Position numbers and translations under genes: made by a program | DNA from: Ruditapes philippinarum | Taxonomy: Eukaryota | Direction: 5' to 3' | Assembly (NCBI RefSeq): GCF_026571515.1 | Contig: NW_026864127.1 | Coordinates: 1 to 64,000, forward strand | DNA length: 64,000 nt | The notes under the pieces: model-generated | The model's database searches: none | Seen by the model: only the letters and a program-made list of their open reading frames with translations | Told to the model about the DNA's origin: nothing | Shown: positions 6,101 to 34,746 of the stretch, one piece after another | Layout: every line of letters begins with the position of its first letter | How positions within the stretch are numbered: position 1 is the first letter of the stretch

Positions 6101-9100
6101 TAAACGATACATGATATTTTATCTGTTCAAGTTCTTGTTCTCAATGTGTATAAAACAGACAAATAAATTTTGATATAAAATTTACTCTTTTTATCTTCTT
6201 AGAATTGAAAGATTTGTTTTGAAATAAAGCAGGTGTTCTGAAATAATATAGACGCTGAAATGTAACAAAAAGAATATTTATTAGTGGTTTCTGAATAATA
6301 CTTGTACTCTTAATATGTTAACCTTTTTTTCAATGAGTTAAATGTTTGACTTGCACATATTTTCAGCGCGGGCATCGGTCGAACTGGGACTTTGATAGCA
6401 ATCGATAGGTTGATAGAAGAGGGCTTGGACAAAGGTTCAGTGAACGTGTTTGAATGTGTTAAGAACATGAGAGAACAGAGAGTAAAAATGGTTCAAACAC
6501 TTGTAAGTAATCATTTGCATGTTTTATGTTGACATTTAACTGACTTTTGCTACACTTAATTGACCAAATTAGATTTATAAATTATACTAAGGATTTTGTT
6601 TCTTATATTTCAATTTCATGTGCAGGAACAATACATTTACATTCATAAAGCGCTGGTAATGGCACTGACATTTCGCGCTGAAGCTGTACCCGTTGAACAA
6701 ATTCGTGAATATGTTAACCGATCAAATGGAGATATGTTCAGCATGCTTTTTCAGGTATGGAATAACTTATAAATGAAGTTCATTTTAATAGTTCATTTTC
6801 GTTTTTCGTAAATGGTAAAAAGTTTAAAATTCATTTACTTACAAAAATCAAATTACCACTTATTTATTTGAAGCCTGTCAACTGTGATCAGAATGCGACT
6901 AATGAAAGTAAAATTAAAGTACAATTACCAAAACAAATGAACAAATATAAAACATAAATATGTAACAAATAATAAGACCAAATGATTTAATTCGTTGATA
7001 GATATCTGCTATTTCATGAAACGTTTATGATTTATCCTTAATGCAGTACGCCTCCAGATTCATGCTAATTTCAATGAAAAATTTGAAAATGTATTTAAAT
7101 GTGTAATATTGTGAAATAACTAAAAGGAAGTAATTTACACATTATCAATTGCACACACAAATCACGTAAATTACCAAAAATTTGTCAAAATATGCATAGA
7201 AAGCATTTACTGCGTTAGTAACGCAGTAGAGATATAATTGTAAATATTGAAAAATCAGTCATTAATCGCGCAAAATATGTAAAATATTACTTGAATCTTG
7301 AAACTCTTTACTTTGTCTTACATCTTAGTACATTTTTCTCTAGTTTGATTTTATTGAAATATTTTGACTCATCTGGAGGCATGTTGCTTTATAGACAGAC
7401 ACACTGTATTTTTACATAAACAAACAAAAATGGATATATTCATAGAGATAGAAATGTCCCAGAGCTGATTTAGATATTCTTGAAAGCAATATATGATTAA
7501 TATGATTATCTTAACTTTGATGCATTATTTAAGTTTTTTGACTCATCAAATGACAACGCTCCATGTTCGTACCGTTTTATATTTTTTATTGTATAGCAAT
7601 TGCAACAGACGATCGAAACAGACAGCGAAGCAGAACAGAAAGCTCGCATCAAAAATAAAGAACGATCGGGGAAAAATCGTCGCGGAGCAGACATTCCAGG
7701 TAGAACCTGCATGAATTAATCCAGAAAATACATACTAAAAGACTATATAGCAGTAAAATGTTATGGAATTGATGACACATAAGAAAATGAGAAAAGGTTG
7801 TATATGTTTTATACTTAATCTTAGGCAAATATCTTTTATTTCAGGCAGTCGATTTAGCATATTTCTTCATTTAAACAGAGAAGGGGACGAATCTGAATAT
7901 ATTAATGCAGTATACATAAACGCAAGTATCTTATTGAATATATTATATTTATTTTACTGTGCTTTAATAGTAATACATTGATTTTTTTATGGCTGTCTTA
8001 TACATGTAATTGCACGATTGTAATTGTTCTCATGTTTTATCCGGAAACAATAATCATGTAGCAATTAGGACTGATTACGAAATGATATTTACGATTGAAG
8101 ATACAACAAATTGTTAAATAGATAAACTTATGCATGAGTGAAGATTATTTTCTTAGATACTAAGATTTTTAAATTTCGTTTTAACGTTAATTTGTCGGAC
8201 AGTTTAAAACTATTTGTCCTTTAATTGCAGAGTTTCAAGAAAAAAGATCACTTCATTGCAGCGCAATCACCTCTACCAAGTACGGTTGAAGATTTCCTTG
8301 CTTTAATTTACCAAGAGAATTGTAGTTGTATTGTCGCTATGGAAGATTTGAATGAGCCTGGAATGGTTATTATATAATTATGCTTTATTCTAAATGGATA
8401 AAACTGTTTAAGAAGCACACACTAATTTACGAAACAATTCAAACCTTTCTTAACATCGTATCTAAAAGAATTGTTTCTACTTAGCCTAATTAAGCATTTC
8501 AGTACATAACCTTAGATACGAGCAAGAGATCTGCTAGTAATGGTTTGAGAATCGATACTAGTATGTGACAATAGATATCCGTTATCTCTCGATTAGGACA
8601 GATCTTTGTATTAATATATTCATTATTGTAAATGTACTATTTTTACTAACATTTAAAAAATCACTTGTTTTTTAAAATTTTATATAATCAGTAAAAATGG
8701 TTCGTTTTATCCCGCTTAATTTATAACAAAACATTCACCATAGTACGAATATCTTTTATAAAACAATCAATATATTAAAGTATAAAATTGGGTTTTTTAC
8801 AAAGTCAAAGAAGAAGAAAAAAGCAACTAAAGGCATTGAATATCATTTCACTCTGCAGGGTTTAAGAGAATCATAATTGAAACAAATTAATCAAATGATT
8901 TAAAGTCACTATCATTTTAAACTATCAGTCCCTTCAGGCGAGTTTTTCTTTTCTCGTTTAAGATATAAATCAAAACAGTGGCAATAAATTAAATTTGTGT
9001 TTGTTAGTTACTTTCTTGCCATGATATAAACTTTGCTAAGTCTAGGAGAATGATTTTATTAAACTATCGGTTGTGGGAAATGATAGAACGTTACTTCGAG

Positions 9101-11902: not shown

Positions 11903-14900
11903 GTCTGTACAGGAAAACAGAAAAGAGAAAAAGTGACTTTTATAAATTTATTTTTATAGTCAGAATAAAAAATAACTCCAAATTTATCATTTGCTATATT
12001 ATGTACTCATCATCTTAAAGTTACATTGAAAAACAGGAGTCACCGCGGTTTCTTCTGGTGGTGATGCGTTTAAAGAAAATACATTTCACTATACAGTGGT
12101 GCTTATTTTCATCTAGCATATAATTGATCGGATACACATCCGCTGCACATTCATACATTGTTTTTAGATATATTAGTGTTAACTTTAAAATCAGCCAAAT
12201 GCAATTAAACAAATCTTTTGATATTTATGTTCATAAACTGTGAATTTTAGGAACGCGTTTCGAAATGTTTACTGAGAGTCACTTTGACGTAAACGTTTTT
12301 TTGTGTTGTTATTATTGCCAAAATAACAAGTCACTCTACTAAAAACTATATAATTCGACCCCATTCGTAAACCAATTATATACAGTATTTCCTTTTGGGC
12401 ATCGTGTACAAATGTTCTTGCTATTTAAGTTCGAAAACGAAGCAAATACAGTTTCTACAAACCTTATGATAGGTAACCATTGTCTGAAGGGATCTATCTG
12501 ATTTTAATTAAAAATTCAATTCACACTGAGTGTTTGATTCCTTTCTCACGTTTATTGGAATACTTATTCAGACATTATTCTTGTGTTATTTATATTTCAT
12601 ATTTCTTCCGCTGTTTTTGTACTATGTTCATGTGTTTATTAAGACCTTATAGGTTTGATCTTGATATGTTATAACTTTTATTGCTCATACAAGCTTCTGC
12701 ACTGGGGAACAAACTGTACCTGGTAGAATTCGGTAAATTGTAAGGTTATGAACGGTAAACAAAACCAGAATCATAAAGACTGCTTCATCAACATGTATAT
12801 AATAACTATCTTGATCATGCTAGTAATCAGTTTTAGAACACTCGCATTATAAGATAAACTTTTTAATGAGGCTGTTGATTGCAATTTTTTTATTGGCTTT
12901 GATCTAAGAGAATATCAAAGTTTTTTTTGTGAATATATACATTTAGTTATAAAATAAAAAAGGTTAGTTAGTTTGAAATGATCGATACATGTTTTTAAAA
13001 AAGTATTAGACAACTCAATACACGCCTAGTAAACAATACAGCTACCTCATTCTGGGGTAAACGGTCAATCGCTTTATCGCTACTTCCGAGCAAGTTCATG
13101 TCGCTAAAATTAGGTGTCAAATGTTGTCATTTTTATATATTTTGTAAACTCTACACTAAATATCGAAATTCGGAGATTGCTATGCTATGTAGATTTGATT
13201 GAGATTTATAATTTGAAGTTGTTATAATTGTATTTGAAATGTAGTTGTGGCGGCGTTTCCCAGTTAGCAAATTTAGCGTTGAAATGGACCTTTTTATCAT
13301 GAAACAGATTATTTTTTATCCAGTTGTTATCATAACAGCGATTCAAGTTAAAAAAAACGTTTCAAACAGATATCAGATAAAATTTAAATCAGAACAACAC
13401 ATTAGTTACTAAAGAAAATATAGGACATTTGTTTTTCGAGACAGCTCTGTCATGAAATAGGTGGTCAAGACACCAAAGAGATAGTTGGTTACGTACAAAG
13501 TATCTTATTTTTGTGTATATTTTATCCACTACATTAATCACGGCATAAAATTAATAAAAACAATATTATACCAATCTTATTACTACACATGTATATCATG
13601 ATGTAATTTGCATAATAAAACATCTGATTCGACAATTACACCGTTCAAATTGTTATCGTAGGCTATTAATAATATATTTCATGTGGTTGTTCGACAAATT
13701 CCGCCCCTTCTTCTGCCAAACAAGAGGAAAATAATGACCAAATATGAATTAATCTTAGTACATATGTATGCCAAGAAATTGGATATAACTCATCAAATAA
13801 TGCCATTACCTTAGGTTTCAAAGCTCCTTAAAAAGAATGTTTTTACGGCGTGCTATGATCTCCCAGCTATTTCATTTAATATGTCGTTTAAAATCATGTC
13901 ATAAGTTAGATCATTTCGATTAATGTCACTGAAAATGTAAAAACCTATCGTTATATATAAGACAAGTTGGCAATAAATATGATATGACATTTAAAAAACA
14001 AAACAAATAAAATGATGACATTTTTTCCTGAAATAATAATATTGTTCAAACCTTGATTTATTGATCTGTTTATATTGCCTTTTCTTTGCCAGTAAGGGTC
14101 TCCACAAACGTTTTATAGAGTAGAAAAACAGTGTGTTTGGATTTTCCCTTATGAAAAAGCATTACAATAACTATGCAATTTTAGATTATGACTTAATCAG
14201 CTGTGTGTATCGGCTATTCACAATGGTTCGGAGTTTTGATGTGTAAGAATTCACAACGATAGCCCTAGGCCTGATTGGTATTTTTTTATTTGCATCAGAA
14301 CGACAAACTGGTGTTAATAGCCGTTAATAGATTGATATATATTCAGTTCTAAAAAAGACAAGTTGAGGGCTATCGATAACGCTATTTTTCAATCGGAGAA
14401 TAATTTCAATACATATTTTCGAGTTTTTTTTTCTCTTTTTGCTGTTCTATATCACAGTCTACTGTTGTAAAAGTGAAAACAAAAACAGAAAAGAAATTTA
14501 TGAGTAAAGTCTCATTTAAAGTATCGTAAATAATTATTTTTATTTTCAATATTTAGATATTTAGAAATGCAACGTGTTTACATCGATTGTAGATAAATCG
14601 ATAAACGTCGGCATCTTTGTAAGTTTATATGACGTCATTATTGAGTGCCTTTTCGAATTAATTGCAAACGGGATGGCGTCATTGTAATGCATATGAATGG
14701 TCATATAGATTAAATCAACTGATATGGATAAGGATGATATTGAGAAATTAACAAAAATATATATCAAAAGAAAACATAATTTAAACGGAAAATATCCATA
14801 TTCATTTATAATGGTCCGTTGTTAATTCATTTTATCAAAGGGATACATGTAAACAAGACATCTCGTGTTTATTTGCAGTTATATTCTTCTTTTTATATTG

Positions 14901-15799
14901 TGACAAATGGATCGTGTTTAAATATAACATATTGTTTTTTTTGTTTTTTTTTAACGTTTAAAAATCTTCGGAATTTGGAATTTTCATTTATTTACATTTG
15001 CAAGGTTCATATATCTGTGCATAAGAAAACTATTTCTAATTATACATTTGTCTCACTGAAATGAACAATTACAACCATGTTAAGTTGTGATATTCAAACA
15101 TACACCTGCCTAGGAAATATATTATCGTCTTTTTATCTTCTTATTCAAATATTTATACCTATGTTTTGGTGTATGCTATTTGTTAAGTGTCTATTGATAT
15201 ACGTAAAGTTTGATTGAAATGCTTGATTGTATTATATTCATACATTGGTGTACAACGAAATAAAATTTCAATCATTTTGTCGTTTGTCTGATTTGTGATT
15301 AAAAAATTCAAATATGAGTGAAGACATATAAACACATTTTAGTCCACTGCAGCACAAGCTGATCAAGCTGTGAAGATCTAATTCTCCTGTTATCTGTTAT
15401 ATTCAAGAAACATAACCTCCCGAATAAATGGTCAAATTTCAATAACACATTTTATAATGTGTTTTCTTATAAAGTTTATAGAAAATAGCATTATCAATGG
15501 CAATCACAAGAAACACCTTTTTTATAATCGTAAGTATTATCTTCCAAGGTTTTTTTCTCCCCAAAATCATTCTTATTTTAGATTATTATACAACATAAAA
15601 TAGTCGAAATATTTTGCTGAAAAACTTTGTAATTAAAAGAATATGCTATTTCACAAAAATAATTGAAATACGTTTAATTATAACAAAAGATATGGTTTTC
15701 TATTATTCACATTTTATTTAAAGAAAATTGCGTTTTGTTTCAAATTTATATCAGTTTATATACTTTTTTGCCTAATTTATGAGTTAATTTTACGAGTAA

Positions 15800-20499: not shown

Positions 20500-20940
20500 G
20501 TCCAATTAGTTATTTATTTACTCAATTAATTAATTATTAATTTATTTATTAGTTAATTAATTAATTCTAAATAAATAAATAAATTCATTCATTCATTCAT
20601 TCATTCAATTAATTATAAATATATAAATAAATAGAAAAATAAATAATTAAATTAACATATTGATAAATCAATATATTAATAAACTAATAAATTAATACAC
20701 TTATTAATTAATTAAATAAAGAAATCAATAAATAAATAATTAATTAATAAATTAATAGATTGATAAATTGATGAATTAATAAATAAATAAATTATTTTTT
20801 TAATAAATTGATTAAATAAATAAATTAATTAATTGGTTTATGAATTAATGTTACAAATGTCCAATTAGTCTAATAATGAATTAAAATATATCTGAAATAT
20901 TATGATTTCGCTTGGATTATTACCTTAAGTTTCATAAACA
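20500..20940 (+). repeat. First, partial unit of the tandem array that resumes at 33931
   Basis: AT-rich (AATA/ATTA) block followed by TGTCCAATTAGTCT...TCTGAAATATTATGATTTCG...TTACCTTAAGTTTCATAAACA, as in the units at 35173, 36502 and 37487. Confidence 0.85.
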
Positions 20941-21395
20941 TTAATAGCGACTGTTTTTTTTAATCATATAAATATATAAATGTATATTTCTTTCCATTAA
21001 TTTATAGTATTTGTTCTGTGTAGTTAGTTATTATTTATAGTAGGATATAATTTTATGATTAGTATGATATTTTCGTGTTATTATAAATGTTTTACTAGTC
21101 TCTTATAATTCAATGATTGAATGGTCAGGTACTTTTCTGTGTTTTATGTTTGCTTATGAATTTTATTTGTGTATGTGCATGAATGAGATTTAAAGGGCCC
21201 ATTGGTTGGTAATTTACCACAGCGATATTTCCATTTATATTCGTAAGAAAAAGCCACTAAACCTTATTCAGCGGAAATTACCGACTGCTGTCGTGTTTAT
21301 TGGAGCATAAATCACCGCTTATCATTGGCCAGTATTTCACGCGTTTTACGATTCAACGCACCTCGGCGATTTACGGAAAAAGTCGGAAGAAACTC

Positions 21396-21411
21396 GGTGT
21401 GACGTCACACC
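21396..21411. promoter_or_regulatory. Perfect 16-bp palindrome with CRE/ATF core (GGTGTGACGTCACACC) upstream of the transposase
   Basis: TGACGTCA core about 100 bp upstream of ATG 21509, in a CpG-rich terminal region. ATTGG boxes are nearby. Confidence 0.6.
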
Positions 21412-21991
21412 CAGTACTCATTCGAGAATCGCCATATTGGAAACATTGAAAAAAAATATCGTACAGTAATTTTTAGACTTATTCAGCGTAATTGGTTGGA
21501 TTTAAGCAATGGGAGGCGCGAGATGTGTTGTTGGAGGATGCAGCAATAAAAGAAGTGAGCGGGTTAGTTTACATCAATTCCCTAAGGACACGAACATTCG
21601 ACAACAATGGGTGAGGGCTATCAAGTGTACAGGAACGAATGTCTCTAGAGCTGACTGGAATGGACCTAGTTCTTCAAAATCAGCACAAGCACAATTGGTA
21701 TGCTCTGAACATTTTGAATTCACGTGCTTTACCCTCACCACAAGGATGCATTGGCAGCAGGGATTACCATACAAGGCTGCCCTTACTGACGAAGCGGTGC
21801 CTACCCTGTTCGGTGTACAGATACAGGAGTATAAGAATAGGGTAGAGAATCCAAGTTCTAGAGGAGCCTTTAGAAAACGTGAATTGGAAAGAGTAAGTGT
21901 ATTTCTATGCATATTTATTTGATGTCAAATTTTTGAAAAATACATATTAAAATAGGTAAATTTTGTGGCTAATATATGAACTGTTATTGTA

Positions 21992-22373
21992 TAGGAAGTG
22001 GCTAGCCATACGGCTAGCCAAAAGTTCTAGCCGTACGTGAGTCACGAACGACTAGCCAGGACACATTGTTTTGGCTAGCCGTACGGCACTTTTAAAAAAT
22101 GTATGGAAGGCGAAATTGCATATGTTAATTATGACTTAAAGCGAGGATTTTAGTCAAGAATGTTTACTTTTTAGAGATTAATCGAGGCGTTGGTTACAGT
22201 AAACACTTGTTTAAAGAAACAAAATAACATATGCATTTATGACTTCCATATATTTTTTAAAAGTGGCGTGCGACTAGCCAATACAGTTTGTCTAGACTAG
22301 TCGTACGTGACTCGCGTACGGCTAGAACTTTTGGCTAGCCGTACGGGCCCGTACGGCTAGCCACTTCCTACTG
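21992..22373. mobile_element. Fold-back MITE in transposase intron 1
   Basis: About 130-bp inverted arms TAGGAAGTGGCTAGCC.../...GGCTAGCCACTTCCTACTG with internal GGCTAGCCGTAC repeats. The right end is followed by TA (Tc1/mariner-like). Confidence 0.85.
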
Positions 22374-24096
22374 TATACAGGTCAAGCACGTCTCAACAAA
22401 TGTTTGTTAAAGAAAGAATATAGTTGGATATTTTTTAAAACATCAAAATTCAAAGTAAATTTTATGTGGTCTGCAAAATTTATAGAATTCTACGAAGTCA
22501 TACATGGAACATTTGGATGAAATTTGCACTGTAATTTGTAAAATGCTTAGGCTATCTCAAGGATATATCACTAGATTGATTTCAAGTCAGCTTGGTGTGA
22601 TCAACTTGGAACAACTTAGCCTGTATTCAGCTCATGTTACATTCATTTTGTAAATTACACAAATATTCATTTTGTAAATTGGGCAAACAAAGTATGTTTC
22701 ATCATAGAAAATTACGCAAAATCTGCTAAAGAAATGCATCTAGACCTTCTGTTAAAAATTTGTTAAATAATTAATATAATAATAATACATTTTTTTAGAT
22801 TATTGGAGAATATGAAGTCACACCAACTGGACATGCTGAGCAACCCCTACCAGTCAGACCAGCACTACTTCAGCCCTCCACTGGACAAGTGAAAGAGACG
22901 CTAACGGTAAATATCAAGTGAACATTTGTTTCCACATACACAAGCTAAATCTGTACTCTCAGTTTGTGTTTAGCTTAGTAATGGAAGTATTTGAACTTGG
23001 TTTTGATAAAAGACCCCAAGTTTTATAGGCTATTAATTGTAGCGTTAGATGCTTGCCACTGTTATTTAACACACATGAATATTGTATGTAAACATAGTAT
23101 TGTTCTGCTTAGTACTATTTTAAGTACGCTCTTGTCTATTTAGCAATGATTTTGTACATGCACTATTCATTTTTAATGCAGTTAAAGAACATAGATTTTC
23201 CACTCAAGAATTTTGGGAGATTTTTTTTAACTCAAACAATAATATTTGCAGCAGATGTATAGCCTCACACACTTAAAATGTCTAGGAATAATTAATTTCG
23301 AAAAATTATCCAAAACATATACAATAGCAGGTGGCCATGTCAAACACTAAGCTGCTATTACACAATGGACCCATTTCATAGCAGTGATGGCAAAAAATCA
23401 GTTAGGAAAAATCATGCAAAGGTCATTTATAATCCGAACATATTTCAATAATTTGTATAAACAGAACATGTGTTTTACTCCATTTTAAACAGCTATGAAA
23501 GGAATTATATACTAAAGATTAGGAGAAAATATATCAATATTTCAGTGTTTCACTGTATTCACAGAAACAAAATTTCAGTGTGTCATTGGGTATCAATGTA
23601 TAAATCAAATATGCTTTTCACTGAATCAATGACAGCTGTAGAGAATTCATAATTTTCTTTTTGGTTTAATAACATTGATTGTCTAATATACATGAATTAT
23701 GATAATTTTGTTTTAGATACATAGTGATGCCGAATTACCTGAGATTAGTGAAAATGGGCCATGTGTCAGTGAGAACAATCAGGAGTCTGAGGACAGTTTA
23801 TCAGTACAGACAGAAGTATGGATCTTTTTAAAGATTATTTTCTTCTTAAAAGTGTTAAAGCAGTTTAATCCATAATTGAGAAAAATCTTTTCATTTTTTA
23901 ATCTTTATTGTTCTTTTACAATTTTGCGACTTCTATTTTGTTACTACTTTTTTGATTTCTATAGCTTCTTATAAGAAACATGGCTGTGAACTTATTATCT
24001 CAGAAAATCTCACAAAATGTGAACATGCTGATCAATAAATCTCTTATACAGATTTAAAGTGGATTACATCATAGTTTCCTGTCCATATTAATATAG

Positions 24097-24294
24097 CAGT
24101 GATTTTCCTACTTACATAACAGACTCCGAAAAAAGGCCTCTTCCCAATTGAAATTTTCTTTAAAATCATGCAGTTTTCCCAAAAATTTGAACTTAAACCA
24201 GCTTTTTTACTTCCCAAATCAGCAGTTTTAGCGATAATTTTTCCCAAAATCAAGAGGCTAAGGCCTCTTCCCAATTAAGTGGGAAAAAACACTG
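24097..24294. mobile_element. MITE with CAGTG...CACTG termini and 5-bp TSD TATAG
   Basis: TATAG|CAGTGATTTTCC...GGAAAAAACACTG|TATAG, with internal TTCCCAA repeats. Confidence 0.75.
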
Positions 24295-25865
24295 TATAGC
24301 TCTGTGATTTAGCCAAGTCTTCAAAGAAAGAGCTAGCCTAATGCCAGATCAACATACATACATTTCTACATAGGAATTTTGCTCACTGATACAAAAAAAT
24401 AACCTCAAGTTTCACTGATCTTTCTATTACATATGTCAGCATCCATTAGTAGTTGTACTTTTTAAAAAAATACTGACCAACAGTAATGTGTAATTACATT
24501 GTTGAAATCCAGTCATTTGTTTCATGCTTTCTAGTGTTTTACTGTAATATATCAGATGATTATACTCTGATAAACCACTAGTGCAATTTTTAAAATATAA
24601 ATTTTACTGTGGCCGGAAAATATGTGAATGTCGGTGAAAAGAATATCATAACTAAATAGGATACAGTAATAGGCAAAGCTGATTGCTGTCATAAGTAATT
24701 TTTGCTTCTTTAGGAACAGACAGTTAATATCATCTGATCTTACATCATGTTCAAAATGTAACCAAAGTAGAGAAATTTTAACAGAACTATATTTCAAAAT
24801 TGATGACGTGGTGTGATGATGTCTCATAAGAGAATGCACGACGTTAAGCGGCAATATCAGTAAAAATACTTTAAATCACTTAAAAGTATGAAATAAAAAG
24901 AAAATTTATTTGTTATTCATATAAGATTAAAATGTATTTCATTTGTGAACACCAACTTTTCTATCTTCACTTGTGGTTACGCCACTCATAAAGTTATTGC
25001 ATCTGGTGTTCAATTATTTACATATATTTCAATCTTACATGCAAAACAGTCAAATATCCTCTATGTATCTTTCATTCTTTGTATTCTGATTAAATTAATT
25101 ATTTCCTTAATGATCTTTTTGACAGAGAGCAAATCTTCCTATAAAGACATCTGAAGAAAACAAGAGTCAGTGCCCACCACAATGTGCCCAGGACGAGGTT
25201 TCAGACTTGATCAAGGTATGTTTGTTTCAGTTATTAAAAAAATGTAGAAAAATGTGGAATTTGTGTTAGACATTCTGATGCATATAGATTTTGTGTCTTG
25301 AAGAGCTGAATTTATGGCAAATGAGCGGAATTGTCAAGCAACGACAAAATTTAATCAGACATGAATCATAAAAGGGTGACAGATATCAAATAGAACACTT
25401 GTTGAATTGTTACAGCCCAATCAGTAGGAACTAGAAACCAGTGTCTATGTCATATATGTATATAGCTATGGATTTTTTTTATCTTTACAGGAGGATGGTA
25501 GATGTCTTTGTATAAAGCCCGAAACAACTTCTACAGGGACCCAGGTAAAGCCTGGAACAACAGTTAAGGGAGTTCAAGTCAGCAGAAAAGTTCAAGTCAC
25601 AAATGCTGTGAAAGGTAGTGTATAATATTCAGTTAATCAGTTATTTGTGACTGTTGAGCTTACCAGTAAGAAACACCTTTTAAATTGTAAATCTTGGTTA
25701 CAGGTTTAACTATATGCTTTAGTACGTTTTGAGATAAATATGATAATTTATGAATCTACAACTGCCAACATCAATATTGGCCCATCATTGGGGTAACTTA
25801 GTTTGATTAAACATACTTAAGCTTGATTGCGTAGTTAAGTTCTTGCAACTTATATTTGTCACTTT

Positions 25866-25955
25866 CAAGTTCGCTTCCTGGAACCAGCCAGTACTGTTGT
25901 CATATGAAGGAACATGGCTGTGACCGGATTAGGGCTTGAATCTATGATCCACTGG
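25866..25955 (-). mobile_element. Decayed tRNA-derived SINE fragment
   Basis: TTCCTGGAACCAGCCAGTACTG central block, plus a degenerate B-box-like GGGCTTGAATC on the opposite strand. Confidence 0.45.
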
Positions 25956-26629
25956 TTAAAAACTATTCAAAGACTGACTGGACTAAAGATTAGGTGGACC
26001 CAAAGTCTGACTCTAAAGCTGGCTTAGATCAGTTTTGAATCAGGTACTATTGGGTCAGGTATGCAAGTGGCAAAAATCACAATTTAAAGTCTGTTTTCAG
26101 TCCAACTGAAACAGACAACAATGCCTCTGGACCGTCTTTATGAATGGCAAATAAACTTTGCTGTTATGGTAACATTGGGGATAAGTGCACTGTGGACACA
26201 TTTGTAGATTTTATTTGTCATTTTCAGCTACTCAGACTTTGCGAAGACATACAGTTAGGATGGTCTCTTCATCTAGCCAGTATAATGTTAGCGATTGTAG
26301 TGAATGTCTCCCTGACAGAGATGATACACTCCATTGTTTAACACTGTCAACATCTAATAAGAAAGTTACCATATTCTCACCACTGAACACGTCATTCCAG
26401 TCAGCATCAACTGTATACATGGATGACCAAGAAAATGACCCAGACTACATGCCAGATGATTCCTTTCACAGTGACACTGATGAAGAATGCCATAAACAGT
26501 AAGTCATGTCTTTCATGGTTGCAGAGTAATGAGAATTAAAAATAGTTAGTTAATTGACATGCCCATCAAAACCCTCCATGGACTTTTGATTCTTTCATGT
26601 GAGAAAGCTATCAAGCTAACTAAGGGAAC

Positions 26630-26730
26630 ATTTGTGGTTCTGCCCGGGTGCCAATTTGTGTCTGAAATAATGAATGGAGAGGCTTATGAGGTCTTTCTCC
26701 GACAAAAAAGCTGAAAAGTTTTCCTATGAA
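26630..26730 (+). mobile_element. Decayed fragment of the same SINE family as 61653-63236
   Basis: GTGGTTCTGCCCGGGTGCC...CTGAAATAAT...TGAGGTCTTTCTCC...AAAGCTGAAA aligns with 61766-61860. Confidence 0.75.
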
Positions 26731-28216
26731 CTTTATTATGTTGGTGTAACTTGAAAACCTATCCATGAAAAATAAATTGACAAAAGCTATTTTCATTAAT
26801 ATTCTCCTTAGAAGAAATCTATGATAATATTTCACTAATTGATGATGATATCATCATGTCATAATTATTCCTTCATCAATTGTCAGAGGACTGCATGATT
26901 AAAAAAAAAACAAAAAAAAAACATTAAAAGTCCTTGTAAACTTTTTTCTGACTCACACACTCTAAAAATTGTTTGTAAGTGTCCGTCAACTGGTTTAATT
27001 TCTGAAATTGAGAAATACATTTGTTTATTATTTACTTATAAATGAAATATTGATGAAATAAAATGCTTATTTTTATTTTCAGTATTTTCACTTCAAAAAT
27101 TTATTTTTCACTGCAGTGAAACCTATTTTCTGTATTTTCACTGGTAACTTGCCAGGCTACTTTCTTGTTAAATCAGCCAATACACAAAATAAAGGGAATT
27201 CTTCCTATCCATAAGGTTAAAAAAGAGAAAAAATATATAATAAACAGACAATGCCAAGTTTTTTTTTATTTATACAGGATTTAATTTCATCTTGTGATAT
27301 GAAAATTATCATATTTCACTCGTTGCTATAGAAACTCTTGAAAAATTTATTTTCATACCACCTGATGAAAATAAATCCTGTATTTATAGAAGAAACTTGA
27401 ATAATCTCTGTATATTTGAAATAATATTTTTGGTATACAAATAAATAATGGTAATGTATTCTTTTTATCTATTTCAATTATTTTCTTTTGTAGAGATGAC
27501 CCAGTAAAGCAACGAAAGTTTCTTGTGTTTGAAGACAATCTTATGGAACTTTTTAATTCTTGTCAAGTTTGTGGTCATAAAACCGAAGCACAAGTAAGCC
27601 AGGTCCAGGGTTCATATGTTGCGGTGCGTCAGATATGTGACTGCGGTCATACAAGGCGCTGGGATTCTCAGCCAAAAGTTAATGGAGTGCCTGCTGGTAA
27701 TATTCTATTGAGTGCTGGGATATTGTTTTCAGGATGTTCCCCAACAAAGTTCCTACGTGTGTTTAACTTTATCAATATTATGTGTGTCACAGTGAATACA
27801 TTTTTTGACCATCAGAAAAGAATTCTTTGGCCTGTCATAGAAAGAACTTGGAATAACTACTGTGTTAGAATGATGAGAACATTAAGAGAAAGAGGAGGAG
27901 AAGTTGTTGTGGCCGGTGATGGAAGAGCAGACAGTCCTGGTCATTGCGCAAAGTATGGTGTCTACTCACTAATTGACATGAACTCTGGTCAAGTCATTGG
28001 TCTCCATCTCGTACAGGTAATTAATAAAAATTCAATTATAGAATATTCAAGATATCCTGGGGAACAAAATCAAAATTATAAAATGTATGACTTTTTTATG
28101 TCTGATCTGATTCACATTATTTTACGAATGAGTCTTGATGACGACTGTTTATTGAAAAACTAATAGTGATTATTGTTTTAAAATTAGAACTCTGCCATAT
28201 AATTTGCATACATGGA

Positions 28217-28572
28217 CAGCGTTTTTTTCCCTCTTCTTTGGGAATGGTGCCGATACTAGACTGATAGGAAAAATGTGTTATTTTTATTTAAATTTGGGAA
28301 TTTTTTAATGCATTTTTTCTGCTACAAATAAGATAAGTCATCATGAATAAAGATAGGTAACAGCTGCCACTGTCCAGATGGAACTATTGAGTGATGATTT
28401 ATATGAATATGCTGGATTTAAATGATTTCAGAGAAATAACTTGGTCTTGTGGAAATTTTAACAGCCATTTTTGGAATTTAAACATTAGAAATTGGGAATT
28501 TTAATGTCTATTTACTATTTGGAATAGTACCGTTTTAGGGTAGTGGTTATAGAGAAAAAAAAATAACCACTG
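28217..28572. mobile_element. MITE related to 24097-24294, in the opposite orientation
   Basis: CAGCGTTTTTTTCC...AAAATAACCACTG, flanks ATGGA/ATGGC (4/5 TSD match), internal TTGGGAA repeats. Confidence 0.6.
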
Positions 28573-29714
28573 ATGGCAAAGCACTACCTCCATTTTTATA
28601 ATGCTTTTAGTTTAGGAGATTTTTCTGTACATTACAATTTTGAATGTTATGTCACTTAGTAACTTATGTCAATTAGTAACTTGTCATTTTTGCAGACGTG
28701 TAAGTGATCCTGTATTTTGCATTTTCAGAGTAATGAAGTAAAATCAAGCTACCATATGGAGCTTGAAGGATTTTAAAGAGAGCTGTTTCTGCATTAAATG
28801 GGGCTGGAAAAAATATTCTAGAAATTATAACAGATCGCCACATGCAGATACAGAAATGGATCAGAGAGAACATGCCATCTACAGTCCATAGTTTTGATGT
28901 GTGGCATATTGCTAAAGGTAATAAATACAGAAAAGAAAATAGGCTGCTCATATTTATATTTTTTGTAAAATTGATGAACTTCAACAAGCCTTTTTGGGTC
29001 ATCTTCTTCCCACTATTCTATCAATTGTTTCAATAAACACTTTTTCTTATTGGAACAATATGACATGCACTTTACACTTTCACTTTAGGTTCTTAGTTAT
29101 TACGAAATTTATTTTAATAAAATGGTATTGGAAGTATCTTGCTCAAGTAAATAAAAGATTGCATAAAACAGGGATTGGACTCATAGATTGATATAATCTG
29201 ACACATTTACTGCTTGGTCTTGTCGTGATACTTCGATTCTTCTTTAAGTATTTGTCATTAAAGTATGGTAAAAAAGCTGAGTTGTATTGATATCATAATC
29301 AAAGTATCATTAAACATTTGGTCATTTACAGTACATCAGTACATGTACATTTGTTTTGTTTGACTTAGGTGTGAAGAAAAAGTTATTGTCATTAGCTAAA
29401 GAGAAGGATTGTCAAGATGTAAGCAGATGGATAAAGAGTATAACCAACCATTTGTATTGGACAGCTGCTTCCTGTAATAAAGGGGATAGTGATCTTATGG
29501 AGTCTAAATGGAAATCAGTTTCCAGTCATGTTCAGAATATCCATCATGGTCATCAAGGGCCTTATAAAGAATGTCAGCATGATCTTCTTCAAGACAGAGT
29601 ATGGTTGAAGCCAGGTAAACTTGCTTGTCTCTATAACTACTATTACTTGCAATTAACCCTCTGAACTTCATTCCAACATTTTTACTGGTTTTCTCTTATA
29701 TTGCTGAGCTGTAC

Positions 29715-29960
29715 AGCAGTTCCTTCAAGCCCACTTGTGGAGAGCTGCACGTAATTGTCACAATGGCAGTGTTTGTATGTGCATGTGTCTGTCTAGTCAT
29801 CCATGTGTCCGTCAGGTTATGCTTGTCCGGGACGTAATTCTTGAATTTCAAATAACTTGGCACAAATATTCAACATTATGAGATGGCATATCGCACACAA
29901 TAACTGTTTGACAAAGTCATACCTCAATGTCAGATGTCACAGTGGGCTCTTTGGCATCTA
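29715..29960 (+). mobile_element. HINE-like remnant in transposase intron 9
   Basis: Degenerate (TGTC/TCCG) microsatellite, then CTTGTCCGGGAC and TAACTTGGCACAAAT cores shared with other HINEs in the window. Confidence 0.55.
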
Positions 29961-31717
29961 GTTTATTGACAGTGTCTAAGATCTTGATAAATAATTAAAC
30001 TCCTGAACTGTTAATGGGAGTACACTAACTGTACACATCAAAATTTAAATATAACATGCTTGTTATAATGTGTTTTTCAGGAAGTAAAGCAGCTGTGAAG
30101 ATAGAAGATATTGTATGGGGGACTCATTTATGTAAGGCCATCAGGAAGATGTCAACAGGTTTTCAGACATCAACATTGGAATCATTTCACAGTGTGATAA
30201 ACCATTTTGCACCTAAAATGACCAGCTACTCATATTATGGGCAGCTGTGTAGACAGCATTTAGCTGCTCTTCACTTCAATGAAAATATCAAACGAGAGCC
30301 AAGGAAATCAGACAATGGAAACCTCAAATTTAAAATTGTTTTCCCAAAATTTAAAACTGGGGATGACTATTCTGTGAAAATTGTGTCGACAGAGAATACT
30401 TATTTATATGTGCAAACACTTTTAGATACAACATTAGAAATGTGTGGTAAAAAAAATTCTATGGAAACACCAATACCGCCACCCCTGACATCAGGCAAGA
30501 GGAAACCCAGCAAAGCAGAAGCAGTAACAAAGTTGTCATCTCGTTATAAAAAACTAAAATTTTAGAAAAAACTTGTGAACATTATGAGCAAACAAAGTTT
30601 GCACAGTCTTAAGACATTTTTTTACAGTGTTTATAAGAAACTATTTTCTGCTTTAAACTGCCGATAACTTTATTATTTGTATGTTTGTGTTCAAATGTAA
30701 ACAATGAAGTCAAATTGCAGGATACAAAATTACATTATATATTTTACACTCAAAAAAAGTTAAACAAGTCGTTTTTATGAAAGTTGGGCTTCAAGCATCC
30801 ATATACATGTATTGTATTTTAATTTTAAAGAATTTACAACTACAGATGTTATCCGTTTCAAACTTTGATTGCTTGTTCACTTCCATGTGTATGCATTTTA
30901 GCTCAAGGATTAGAAGAAAAATGACATTTATTGTACTCGTCAAGGTGTGCAGTTGGTGTGGGCATAACACTTAACTTTTTGTACATGCAAGTTTGTATAA
31001 TAAAACCAACTGAAAGGAATGAATTGAAACTTGAAAAGGTGAAATAACATTGAACCATTTTGTATAAATAATTTTCTTTTAATTCAATAATACTAAAGAC
31101 TACTTATTAATGGTCGCACAATTGCATCTTTTCCCATTTAAATTGTTTGCTTAGGCAATGAACTCCATCAGTCATACAGAATTATCTTCCCTTTCTTAAA
31201 TATAGCCCAGATTAAAAGCAATAGGGGCTTTCATTTACTGACAGTATTATATTCCATGCTCAAGCTAAAAGAAATTCTGCTAAATGAACAGTATTTTTAT
31301 TGTGCAAAAATGGCCCAAACATGACAGACATAGATTTTCACATATTCTCAGCATATATCAATTCTTTGTATGATCATTTGCATATTTTATTCAGTTGTGT
31401 GACAGAATTTCAATTTTTTGGTTATGGCGTTTAGATTTTACTGGATATTATTGCTTGATTTGTATATAGAGATTTATTGTTTTTGCTGAATGTTTTTTAA
31501 TGTTCATTGATATAGAATGCTGTTGAGAAAATGAATTTGTTCATAGTTATTTAAAAGCATTAGTTGCAGGATAAAGATTAAAATTGTTGCAAATTTAATT
31601 GTTGTTCTGCTTATTTAACCATGGGTCAGTAGCTGTATAGGTGTGATACTTTTCAGATTTTGTACAAATTAGGTTCATAGCGACACATTAACAAAGAGAC
31701 CACAGCTATTAATAGAT

Positions 31718-32050
31718 GTTTGGTCGGGTTGCACAGGTGCAAACCCCGGTTATAGTATGGTGAATGTAGGGCAAGCAGACGGGGGGAAAACTGTTTGTAA
31801 CAGTTTTTTCAGCAACTACTTATCACAGTCTCTTGATATTTGGCATACATCATAAACATGTGGTCCCATACCGTGGATTTTGATTTTAGGTCTGTAGCTC
31901 AACCACATCCTGTTTACTTAGTTAAATTTTCGACATTAATGGTCAATGGTAAATTTTTTTCGTAACATCACAGCATCATGATATTTGGTATACAAATGCA
32001 TCCCAGCCTTTTCTGTCTTTGACAGTCCCACTATGGACATTGGATTCAAA
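31718..32050 (+). mobile_element. HINE-like remnant between the two Kolobok genes
   Basis: 5' hairpin CGGGTTGCACAGGTGCAAACCCCG, plus repeated TGATATTTGG(C/T)ATACA cores. Confidence 0.45.
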
Positions 32051-32164
32051 TAATATACTAGTTAGCCAGATGCTTCAACTCGAGATTGGAAATAACCGGT
32101 AGACAAGAGAAAAGAAAAAATCATTTACATTTACAACTTTTAATAATTCTTTTTATAATTTATT

Positions 32165-33652
32165 TCATGCATCAGAAAACCCTTTGTAAACGTCTGATGG
32201 GAAAGTACTTCTTATCAAGTTTACAGCACATGAGGGAAGCACAACTCGAACTTCTTTGCCAAGGTATCCCCAACACCACCTGGCTAACTGCCTGTAGGCA
32301 ACATATCTCTGTCGTCTGAAAAAAAGCAAGAAATTACTTAGTTGTCAGAGCAATATCTGGGAAGTCATTACAATATTTTAATAAATTATAGCTTTACATG
32401 AATATTATTACAAATTGAACTTTTGAATCTAGTGTGTAGCCATTTTAAGTATGAAGCTAAATATTGTATGTATATCTATGCCTTAAGTAACTGATAAAAA
32501 TCTCAAGAATTTCATTTCCCCTGTTGGCCTGTATTAATTATGTAAAGTATAAAATAATTTTACAAAATTTCACAGGCACAATTCCATATTCAGCCACGTC
32601 ACCTCTAAGAAAATGCCTTCATGACTTATGTAGTGCACAAACACAGAACATATCAGTTGAATAGTTTAAACTATTGACAAAAAATTAATTTTATATTTAT
32701 TACACTTACTCATTGTTTGTATGCTCAACCTCGCCATATTGTTGTCTGTACTGGTAGTAGGCAGTCTCCAAGACATACCTGTCGAGACAAACAGACTGGA
32801 AACCAGGATGCCGGGTTATACAGGAAAGTTCTGTTGCCGTTTCTTCCTTATACTGCTCTATCTTTAGTTTCACACTGTCAATCTCATTACAACAGATAGA
32901 TTCTCTGTCTGTATCCATTGCTCTACAGTTCTCACATTCACACCTGAAATGATAGTACAAGAAAAGAAAAAATCAGCTTAGTAAACTAGACTTTATTCTG
33001 GAATAGTCTCGGGGTCTAAAGCAACAGTATATAAGGTTAATCTCATTTTATTGGTTTAATACATATAAAGTGATCACTCAGCAAATATTTACAGAGGGGA
33101 CTCCTTGATGCCTTTTAAAAATGACATGTTTTTTATTTCCGTAAGAACAGTCAACAAATATTTAATTTCGATTTTGTTAGTTTTAAATTTACTTCTTATG
33201 AATGTTATTTACGATAGGTATGGTCTTATGTTGTTTAATTTTATTTAGTGCCGATTCATTGCCGAAATTGATTTTAGTGGGTGGGGTATGTTACTTGTTA
33301 CAATCTAGTAATCCTCCTATATTAAATATATATACAATTGAATTTATTAATTAAATAACTTTACAATATTCTTTCCATTGGGTGTATAGAAACTCGAATT
33401 TGCACCACTGAAGTTGAACAAAACAATGAAAAAGAAATGCTTTACAATTTCATACCAGTTTGTGTTGCCCGATCGTTCCGGCTCTTCGTTTTCGATCACA
33501 TCGGCTTGATTATTTGAATTTCCTTCATCAAGCCGCACAATTGGCTCAAACTGGTAAGGTAAAGTCTGAATCTCTTCATCTTCACTCTCAGAAAAAGCAT
33601 TATCTGACGAATATTCGCTCTCGCTGTCATGTATTTCTCTGTAGTCGGCCAT
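32165..33652 (-). CDS. KolX-type accessory protein, homologous to the P2X7 cytoplasmic ballast (Zn/GDP-binding) domain; 193 aa, intact
   Basis: 3 exons: 33652-33456, 32943-32710, 32315-32165 (582 nt, all GT-AG, in phase). Acidic N-terminus, PYQFEP, WCECENCRAM, ESICCNE, SCITRHPGFQSVCL, RYVAYRQLARWCWGYLGKEVRVVLPSCAVNLIRSTFPSDVYKGF. AATAAA follows the stop immediately. Confidence 0.92.
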
Positions 33653-33667
33653 TGTATGTACTTGGAA

Positions 33668-33683
33668 TGACGTCACACCCGAG
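33668..33683 (-). promoter_or_regulatory. CRE/ATF-type motif upstream of the KolX gene, mirroring the left-end motif
   Basis: The minus strand reads CTCGGGTGTGACGTCA, 15 bp upstream of ATG 33652. The left end reads CTCGGTGTGACGTCA. Confidence 0.55.
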
Positions 33684-34746
33684 CAACTGGGGAAAAATGC
33701 CGATCGGCACTTTCCGGAAATATTTCCGTCCCTTTCCGTACAGGTGTGTTTAAAGGGGAACTTTATGGGTTTATAAACAGGTAACCATTCGGTATTTTTC
33801 GTCGGTAACGAGTGCGTTCGATTTATTGTACTTATATCTTGCTATATTCAAAATGTAAAAGCGTCAATCAATGGGACCTTTAAATAAATAAATATTATTA
33901 TACATTGTAGAAATACTCAAAATTTTTTTTAAACAGTATGACAGTCAATTTAATTAATTAATTCTAAATAAATAAATTCATTCATTCATTCATTCAATTA
34001 ATTATAAATATATAAATAAATAGAAAAATAAATAATTAAATAAAGAAATCAATGAATAAATTAATAGATTGATAAATTGATGAATTAATAAATAAATATT
34101 TTTTTAATAAATTGATGAAATAAATTAATTAATTGTATGACAGTCAACTGTACATTAAATTCGGGCGGTGTGTGGTCAGTGCAGTTCTAATTAGCAATGA
34201 GATCAATTATCTTTTATTACCCTTCATGATGGGGCTTTTTCTTAACAGCATAATTACAAGAGACACACACACACACACACAAAAAAAGAAAAAAAAACAC
34301 GGTTTAAAAGAATAATAAAAATAAAAAAAAGAAGAAAAAATGGATGTTGATCATTTGAAAATGAATAGTTCATATATAATAATGTAAGTTAACAAATTAT
34401 ATATACATGTACGCCGTAAATTGCATAGTTTGTAACAGAAATTAGAGCGTTTAGGATGTTTTTCGTCTGCTTCATTGATCTCTTTCTTTCTTTGTTTACA
34501 ATCCAGTTGAATAATTGAATGGCTATTTGTGCTAAAAACGGCGTATTTGAAAATCGTGTAGGCCTGTTCATTTAGAGCACTTAAATAACAAAAGCATTTT
34601 TGTTTACATAAATATTAATTGTACAACACGCCAAATGAAACCAAACAGCATATATTTTGATGTATTAGCGAGGAAAAGAAATACACATAAGTATAATGGA
34701 CATGAAGGTTAACAAAGTAATATCCCACGTCATCAATTAGAATGGC

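Follow-up and report, generated by a model that had tools for sequence, protein, structure and literature searches.

A probable KolX gene of the P2X7 ballast family within a Kolobok DNA transposon of the clam Ruditapes philippinarum

The stretch of DNA analyzed here, hereafter the window, comprises 64,000 nucleotides (nt) of the Ruditapes philippinarum genome (RefSeq assembly GCF_026571515.1, contig NW_026864127.1, positions 1 to 64,000 of the forward strand). It contains a TTAA-flanked Kolobok element of 12.7 kb (21194-33879) and, starting 227 bp inside the right end of this element, a minus-strand open reading frame (ORF) of three exons and two GT-AG introns, whose exons of 197, 234 and 151 nt add up to 582 nt and encode 193 codons and a stop. 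The evidence given below makes it very likely that this ORF is KolX, a member of the P2RX7_C or ballast family and the second gene of a cut-and-paste DNA transposon of the Kol0 lineage of Kolobok elements. The gene and its flank are laid out as follows.

33653-33863, minus strand: KolX 5′ flank inside the element (presumed promoter and 5′ untranslated region), 91-100% identical among other copies
33456-33652, minus strand: KolX exon 1, with the ATG (33652-33650), an acidic Ser-rich tail and PYQFEP; donor GTATGA
32944-33455, minus strand: KolX intron 1 (GTATGA...TTTCAG); a contig of run X1 joins 32943 to 33456
32710-32943, minus strand: KolX exon 2, with C-x-C-x2-C, CC, C-I-T-x-H-P-G-F-x3-C-L and YRQQYG; acceptor TTTCAG, donor GTAAGT
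32316-32709, minus strand: KolX intron 2 (GTAAGT...TTTTTCAG); a contig of run X2 joins 32315 to 32710
32165-32315, minus strand: KolX exon 3, with the RYVAYR helix, LPSC (seventh Cys) and IR..FP...Y.GF; acceptor TTTTTCAG, stop codon TGA (32167-32165)

A preliminary description of the locus, made from the letters alone, had proposed a clean three-exon ORF of 193 amino acids (aa), and the exon coordinates, the summed length and the spliced contigs of runs X1 and X2 all agree with it. The codons split by the introns yield the W ahead of CECENC and the E ahead of RQRY, the stop codon is overlapped by AATAAA, and a palindrome, TGACGTCA, lies at 33668-33675, 16 nt upstream of the ATG. Exon 1 encodes 19 D/E against 3 K/R and exon 2 contains seven Cys; the net charges of the three exons are -16, -7 and +5, respectively, and the protein is acidic overall. 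Since no 19-residue window exceeds a Kyte-Doolittle mean of 0.96 in any exon, KolX is without a membrane segment, as had been stated. The motifs quoted at the outset (RYVAYR, VLPSC, IRSTFP, YKGF and PYQFEP) and the acidic N-terminal tail are likewise all present.

To follow splicing, four public runs were aligned to positions 32000-33950. A contig of run X1, whose junction is printed as 32941/33454 ('cut +2'), removes intron 1 at the predicted borders, and a contig of run X2 does the same for intron 2. Both of the skipped stretches read CT..AC on the plus strand, that is, GT..AG on the strand of KolX. The X1 and X2 contig sets hold 100-136 million letters, which fits transcriptomes rather than a 1.4-Gb genome. 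The junction contigs are 57 and 60 nt long and are not assignable to one KolX copy. These data show that splicing occurs as predicted at the level of the window element's family. In run X22 coverage of exons 2 and 3 was no higher than that of the introns, and run X24 gave zero reads over 32000-33950. The X22 reads pile up over exon 1 and the terminal 230 bp of the element (33492-33884), and many of them diverge into unlike sequence at 33492, at 33701/33706 and at 33884. These breakpoints suggest shorter derivatives, or other insertions that have only the right end of the element in common.

Searches, Pfam scores and alignments were made per exon, with the KolX exons used separately throughout. 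Exon 3 matched the Pfam profile P2RX7_C (PF20478) at 32.0 bits over profile positions 146-191 (gathering cut-off 23.5) and aligns to P2X7 residues 544-591; exon 2 scored 15.6 bits over profile positions 82-128, collinear with the exon 3 match. With exon 2 alone, 942 representatives were found at E <= 0.001 among 1.84 billion proteins. Relatives of full length, measuring 180-220 aa, are known from a hemichordate, corals, a sea cucumber (echinoderms) and fishes, and are named in their sources 'P2X purinoceptor 7-like' or 'P2X purinoreceptor 7 intracellular domain-containing protein'; the three KolX exons tile them exactly, with gapless junctions. Two proteins of R. philippinarum itself, P0001 and P0002, match stretches of exon 2 with identities of 97% and 83%, respectively. 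In addition, every residue that is more than 95% conserved in the KolX-type family is present in the window copy. One further candidate, P0032 (1658 aa), gave 19 short matches to exon 2 and was rejected as a relative; because Pfam identifies it as a protein of HYR-like Cys-rich repeats, the match is compositional.

At the level of structure, a phmmer search of the PDB with exon 2 alone returned nothing at E <= 10, and a profile built from the full-length relatives returned P2X7 only (E 1e-10, residues 469-593). The closest full-length relative, P0012, which shares 56% identity with window exon 2 and 57% with exon 3, has an AlphaFold model with a predicted local distance difference test score (pLDDT) above 90 in its core. 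The top 14 Foldseek matches of this model were all P2X7, the next match having an E value of 1.9, and VIA-align superposed it on P2X7 with Z scores of 8.9-9.9 over 114-121 residues at 3.7-4.1 Å, the next chain reaching a Z of 3.2. Among solved structures, the ballast fold is known from P2X7 alone. The proposal of a stand-alone protein of the P2X7 ballast family is thus borne out by the profile match and, via P0012, by the fold. The link between the families had been suspected to be known already, and it is indeed published (Kojima and Bao 2022, PMC9587614; Rump et al. 2020, PMC7016195). Kolobok elements of the Kol0 lineage code for KolX as well as for a transposase (Kojima and Bao, Mob DNA 2022, PMC9587614); KolX resembles human P2X7 residues 476-595, the ballast with its two zinc ions and its seven Cys, and P2X7 originated when a P2X4-like gene became fused to KolX (PMC9587614). 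That KolX has the P2X7 ballast fold with seven Cys is therefore not new but was published in 2022 (PMC9587614).

The seven Cys positions that form the dinuclear zinc site of P2X7, listed in the preliminary description as WCECENC, ICC, SCIT and PSC, are all present in KolX (W-CECENC, ICC, SCIT and LPSCAVNLIRSTFPSDVYKGF). The equivalence of the CC pair between KolX and P2X7 was taken from Fig. S6 of PMC9587614, because HMMER places these loops differently. The published signature of the domain is WCxCx2C; CC...CIT; (L/I/V)PSC(C/S)x3IRx2(F/Y)P...Y(S/T)G (Rump et al. 2020, PMC7016195), and KolX departs from it in having Ala at the optional eighth Cys (C573), a gap of 3 rather than 5 residues between FP and Y, and K in place of S/T. 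Compared with the P2X7 ballast (PDB 6U9V/6U9W, 8TR5 and 9E3M; PF20478), KolX is alike in its fold, as judged through P0012, in the seven zinc-site Cys, in the R546/Y550/R551 helix and in the LPSC..IR..FP..Y.GF motif. Unlike P2X7, it stands alone, without channel, membrane segment or palmitoylated anchor; its loops measure 10 residues against 15 before CC and 22 against 6 after it, as they do in other KolX proteins (Fig. S6, PMC9587614); C573, H547, R574 and K583 are replaced; and an acidic tail with a P-Y-x-F/Y-E-P motif (PYxFEP) is added.

The ORF had also been placed inside Kolobok terminal inverted repeats (TIRs) and described as convergent with the transposase. Both statements agree with the borders of the element and with the position of the transposase stop. 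The TIRs (16 nt, 3 mismatches) were not reported by an automated repeat search; they were located by reading both ends, and their borders were fixed by the boundaries of the copies. The remaining features of the element are these.

21190-21209, plus strand: left TTAA (21190-21193) and left TIR (from 21194, 5′-AG), terminus AGGGCCCATTGGTTGG; family copies begin at 21187-21190
33864-33883, minus strand: right TIR (ends at 33879, ...CT on the plus strand) and TTAA (33880-33883); the homology of the copies ends at 33883/33884
21509-21922, plus strand: transposase exon 1 (open frame), THAP domain (Pfam THAP PF05485, 58.5 bits, residues 6-101)
27525-28018, plus strand: transposase exon, Cys/His-rich region and putative first catalytic Asp block AGDGRADSPGH; weak Mutator-like match, 39 paralogous matches in the genome, 47% identical to the P0149 core
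28714-28919, plus strand: transposase exon, ITDRH and DVWH (putative C/DxxH signature); frameshifted at about 28760-28770, stop follows ...MELEGF
29368-29583, plus strand: transposase exon (...WIKSITNHLYW...HHGH...), 56% identical to P0149 residues 204-275
30056-30565, plus strand: last transposase exon region, LESFHS (candidate catalytic Glu) and stop; exact 5′ border undefined

The right terminus is an imperfect inverted copy of AGGGCCCATTGGTTGG (13/16), and the right TTAA and TIR are identical in the copies on contigs C13164, C15192, C4325 and C11903. The element thus has the TTAA target-site duplication and the RR...YY termini (5′-AG, CT-3′) of Kolobok elements (termini as in PMC9587614). 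The element is flanked by a host repeat (window 20900-21194 and 33867-34746) that is found in at least 30 copies of 96-99% identity and whose left part ends at 21194; in empty sites, for example on C2752 (20930/20945), C13127 and C11768, this repeat runs continuously across the insertion point. These empty sites, in which the left flank directly adjoins the right one, prove the insertion of the element. A run of N is present in the window at about 34.75-35.0 kb. The palindrome upstream of KolX recurs near the other end of the element, at 21400-21407; both sites lie near the element ends within a similar GTGTGACGTCA context, and either convergent gene has one of them a short distance upstream.

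In the transposase, the blocks AGDGRADSPGH, ITDRH, DVWH and LESFHS occur in the expected order. The Pfam match is a weak Mutator-like one, and the catalytic residues were assigned by eye, with DVWH as the candidate for the C/DxxH signature that Kolobok transposases have between the second Asp and the Glu. The gene stops at 30565 on the plus strand and is therefore convergent with the minus-strand KolX. P0149, the protein used as a reference for the core (Nymphon striatum, KAG1696945.1), is a predicted product of 349 aa that carries a KolX exon 2-like segment (residues 1-64) and a Kolobok transposase core on the same strand, the core being recognized by Pfam as Mutator-like (residues 146-262). 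It is either an annotation chimera or the product of a lineage that has KolX and the transposase gene fused or arranged in tandem.

The genome contains about eight copies of the KolX region, 83-96% identical with introns included, and only two of them, those in the window and on C15192, carry an intact KolX. Copies on C13164, C10432, C4325, C7257 and C10588 are broken by stops, frameshifts or a lost start; relative to the window, their non-synonymous and synonymous changes stand in a ratio of about three to one, as expected of neutral decay. Between the window and C15192, 7 synonymous and 3 non-synonymous changes were counted. The C15192 copy (220985-224158, L022/L035) is the closest, at 95-98% identity; it consists of the right 3.15 kb only, from just past the transposase stop to the right TIR, and no left TIR was found in the stretch inspected. 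In the C13164 copy, exon 3 is 76% identical and has many small insertions in base runs, the adjoining exon 2 being 98.7% identical; this looks like locally poor sequence quality or a patch of other origin. C2689 carries two copies of the left end, 97-98% identical (7961-8688, plus strand, and 14583-15312, minus strand), which face each other about 6 kb apart and may represent a derivative bounded by two left ends.

More distant KolX genes of the same genome are 38-59% identical in exon 2 and retain the three-exon layout and the motifs. Summing the in-frame codons of separate exons and skipping split codons, we obtained for the pair L054 and L056 a non-synonymous divergence (dN) of 0.051 and a synonymous divergence (dS) of 0.77, a ratio (omega) of 0.07; for more distant pairs the proportions of non-synonymous and synonymous differences were 0.18-0.24 and a saturated 0.75-0.85. 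On six contigs (C14517, C3411, C4926, C2508, C2504 and C1802) a diverged KolX (38-59%) lies 4-11 kb from a diverged Kolobok transposase (35-49%), always in convergent orientation, with linkage judged from the match coordinates. The KolX copies on C3411 and C4926 are identical to each other. From contig to contig, the identity of KolX to the window varies in parallel with that of the transposase. These data show that KolX is under purifying selection in transposon lineages, with old copies decaying, and that at least six diverged Kolobok families in this genome keep the convergent transposase/KolX pair. Because the pairs recur on six contigs with covarying identities, and because of this selection, KolX is a long-standing selected component and not the passenger of one copy. 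Neutral evolution of the ORF across copies had been named at the outset as an outcome that would refute the proposal, and it is confined to the dead copies.

These results bear directly on the view that the ORF, whether a host gene or a pseudogene in decay, only happens to sit inside a repeat and has no role for the element. That most copies are broken is what a pseudogene would predict. On the other side, KolX lies between the TIRs and is copied along with them, the same gene pair occurs in at least six diverged families, omega between lineages is far below one, and the window copy keeps all of the residues that are more than 95% conserved, so that we consider this view highly improbable. In the joint claim that the window gene belongs to the KolX family and is an accessory of the transposon we have high confidence.

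Two features set the KolX-type proteins apart from P2X7. The first is the PYxFEP motif, which precedes WCxC by 20-45 residues, lies in an acidic, Ser-rich N-terminal tail that does not otherwise align, and is kept in all of the clam KolX families (PYQFEP, PYMFEP, PYMYEP and PYNFEP) as well as across phyla. The second is a His and a Cys within C-I-T-x-H-P-G-F-x3-C-L, present in 107 and 109, respectively, of 112 representatives, where P2X7 has T/S and V. The literature searched made no mention of a conserved PYxFEP motif or of the extra invariant His/Cys pair; the published alignment of KolX begins at WCxC and hence lacks the motif (Kojima and Bao 2022, Fig. S6, PMC9587614), and a study that traced the stand-alone domain through the Metazoa, including molluscs, saw no obvious homologues of the N-terminal parts (Rump et al. 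2020, PMC7016195). By eye, PYxFEP was compared with a PY-type nuclear localization signal, a WW-binding motif, an LC3-interacting region, a TRAF motif and a clathrin box, all of which were rejected since none fits across the family. It is conceivable, though in our estimate improbable, that the ancestral transposon protein was a metal-dependent adaptor in which the His/Cys pair formed an extra metal or redox site and PYxFEP docked to the transposase or to a conserved host factor, both features having been lost in P2X7 when the domain was captured. If true, this would give a first handle on the role of the ballast fold in any context.

No function for KolX was found in the literature searched. 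We tentatively suggest, from the features of the sequence, that it may be an adaptor or regulator of the transpososome. KolX would then be a soluble accessory subunit, stabilized by its zinc cluster and required in trans for propagation of the element. Its folded ballast domain would offer a basic surface to a ligand or partner, formed by the helix pair that binds guanosine diphosphate (GDP) and calmodulin in P2X7, and its disordered acidic N-terminus would carry PYxFEP as a docking motif for the THAP-DDE transposase or for a host factor. The odds that we would give to this role and to the nucleotide-sensing, end-binding and host-directed roles considered below overlap.

Several points weigh against the interpretation developed here. 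The contacts of KolX with transposase, DNA, zinc or nucleotide are all putative. The comparison with the ballast fold was made with the relative P0012 and not with the spliced product of the window, and in the model of P0012 the N-terminal region of the motif has a pLDDT of about 50-70; because confidence is low there, it is conservation that argues for a docking role of PYxFEP. Runs X1 and X2 stem from different studies and their RNA origin is guessed. The longer transcript contigs carry the variants of the C15192 type and not those of the window copy, and so do all reads of the RNA run X22 at 33569. With the P0149 core as a guide, the transposase exon at 28714-28919 must be read in two frames in the window and in one frame in the C13164 copy, as the preliminary description had foreseen in calling for a frameshift correction. 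The window copy thus combines a frameshifted transposase with an intact KolX, and any activity of the window element would depend on transposase from another copy. Finally, the window protein carries R, Y, V, R and S where rat P2X7 has its GDP contacts R546, H547, R574, R578 and K583 (McCarthy et al. 2019, as given by Rump et al. 2020, PMC7016195), so that two of the five contacts are kept (R546 and R578).

This last point concerns the earlier claim that the motifs of the nucleotide pocket match. The motif frames do align, and that part of the claim stands; with two of five contacts, window KolX lacks the complete guanine-nucleotide pocket of the P2X7 type. The five-residue pocket defines the mammalian receptor and not the wider P2RX7_C family (PMC7016195). 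The same partial set of contacts has been described for relatives from non-deuterostomes, and GDP binding is unproven outside vertebrates (Rump et al., PMC7016195). Among the representatives, the R546 and R578 equivalents are Arg in 39 of 62 and 28 of 40, Y, H or F occupies the H547 position in 53 of 55, and the R574 and K583 positions are unconserved among 112 of the KolX type. Judged from its sequence, nucleotide binding by KolX is possible; it is not implied by the motifs. These observations bear on the idea that KolX is a switch that senses zinc and GDP or guanosine triphosphate (GTP) and regulates or targets the THAP-DDE transposase, with a logic like that of the nucleotide-dependent regulators MuB or TnsC. 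The P2X7 ballast binds GDP/GTP with high affinity, and its soluble domain forms a stable trimer that still binds GDP as well as Ca-calmodulin (PMC9574498); moreover, the pocket-forming helix pair is the best-conserved part of exon 3, with mostly Arg at the R546 and R578 equivalents and mostly Y, H or F at the H547 position. Against such a switch stand the three differing contacts (Y, V and S), two of them (R574 and K583) at positions unconserved in the family, the state of the evidence for GDP binding beyond vertebrates, and the absence from KolX of a P-loop or other hydrolysis motif, which makes a true switch cycle unlikely. We rate the idea as unlikely.

A role for KolX at the ends of the element, as a factor that would bind subterminal sequences and recruit the transposase, can be considered by analogy with the Myb-like protein of PIF/Harbinger elements. 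DNA binding is known for binuclear zinc-Cys clusters of the Gal4 type, exon 3 of KolX is basic, two-gene DNA transposons often divide DNA recognition and catalysis between their proteins, and similar subterminal sequence, including TGACGTCA, is present at both ends of the element. The Kolobok transposase nevertheless has a THAP DNA-binding domain of its own, KolX as a whole is acidic, and the ballast fold had no known DNA-binding relative in the Foldseek and VIA-align comparisons; binding of the ends by KolX would therefore seem rather improbable. The resemblance to the Harbinger protein is one of working alone, in that both would be small second proteins beside a DDE transposase that are co-inherited with it and needed in trans. 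There is no relation in sequence or fold, and DNA-binding and nuclear-import roles have been demonstrated for Harbinger, whereas any such role of KolX would be hypothetical.

Purifying selection and co-inheritance show that KolX benefits the element and leave aside how, which also accommodates an action on the host, by anti-silencing or by timing to the early embryo or germ line, instead of on the chemistry of transposition. Nanor of zebrafish, a domesticated relative, is a gene whose zygotic expression begins at the midblastula transition (PMC9587614). A tail of the KolX kind, acidic and bearing a short conserved motif, is typical of the mimicry or recruitment of host factors. Hosts have captured related proteins twice, as P2X7 and as Nanor, and relatives also occur in piggyBac elements (PMC9587614); these two captures and the piggyBac occurrence point to a function that is portable between contexts. 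What speaks against a host-directed role, which is as hypothetical as its rivals, is that it has no known host partner. We regard it as possible, if somewhat doubtful, and retain the transpososome adaptor as our working proposal.

The closest known systems place the clam gene accordingly. The KolX proteins of Kol0 elements (among them those of Kolobok-1_XT, -1_Aqu and -1_CTe; Kapitonov and Jurka; PMC9587614) are likewise encoded by the second ORF of TTAA-inserting Kolobok elements, are similar in size, and have the same Cys pattern and, when compared with P2X7, the same additional residues between CC and CIT (Fig. S6, PMC9587614), with the CIT-x-HPGF-x3-CL and PACAV..IR..FP blocks in common. 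What differs is the host, a bivalve, the published list for Kol0 comprising vertebrates, annelids, cnidarians and sponges (PMC9587614), and the presence of several diverged Kol0 families within one clam genome. Nanor and the stand-alone 'P2X purinoceptor 7-like' proteins (PMC7016195) share with KolX an architecture in which the zinc-coordinating Cys domain follows an N-terminus that is short and variable, and they bear the same database names. Nanor, however, is regarded as a domesticated single-copy host gene, whereas window KolX is multi-copy, bounded by TIRs and decaying in old copies.

For the window, this work largely confirms what was published, and what it adds is modest: the Kol0 lineage gains a bivalve host, splicing and purifying selection are supported by direct evidence, conservation of the GDP pocket proves to be limited, and two conserved sequence features come to light that we did not find described. 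The P2X7 ballast is an appendage of a drug target, and its ancestor is the transposon protein KolX. A small, soluble and intact KolX, in a genome with several recently active Kolobok families, would offer a convenient system for questions about ligands, be they zinc, nucleotides, calmodulin or a partner protein, and the clam protein could also help to ask why a cut-and-paste transposon needs a ballast fold.

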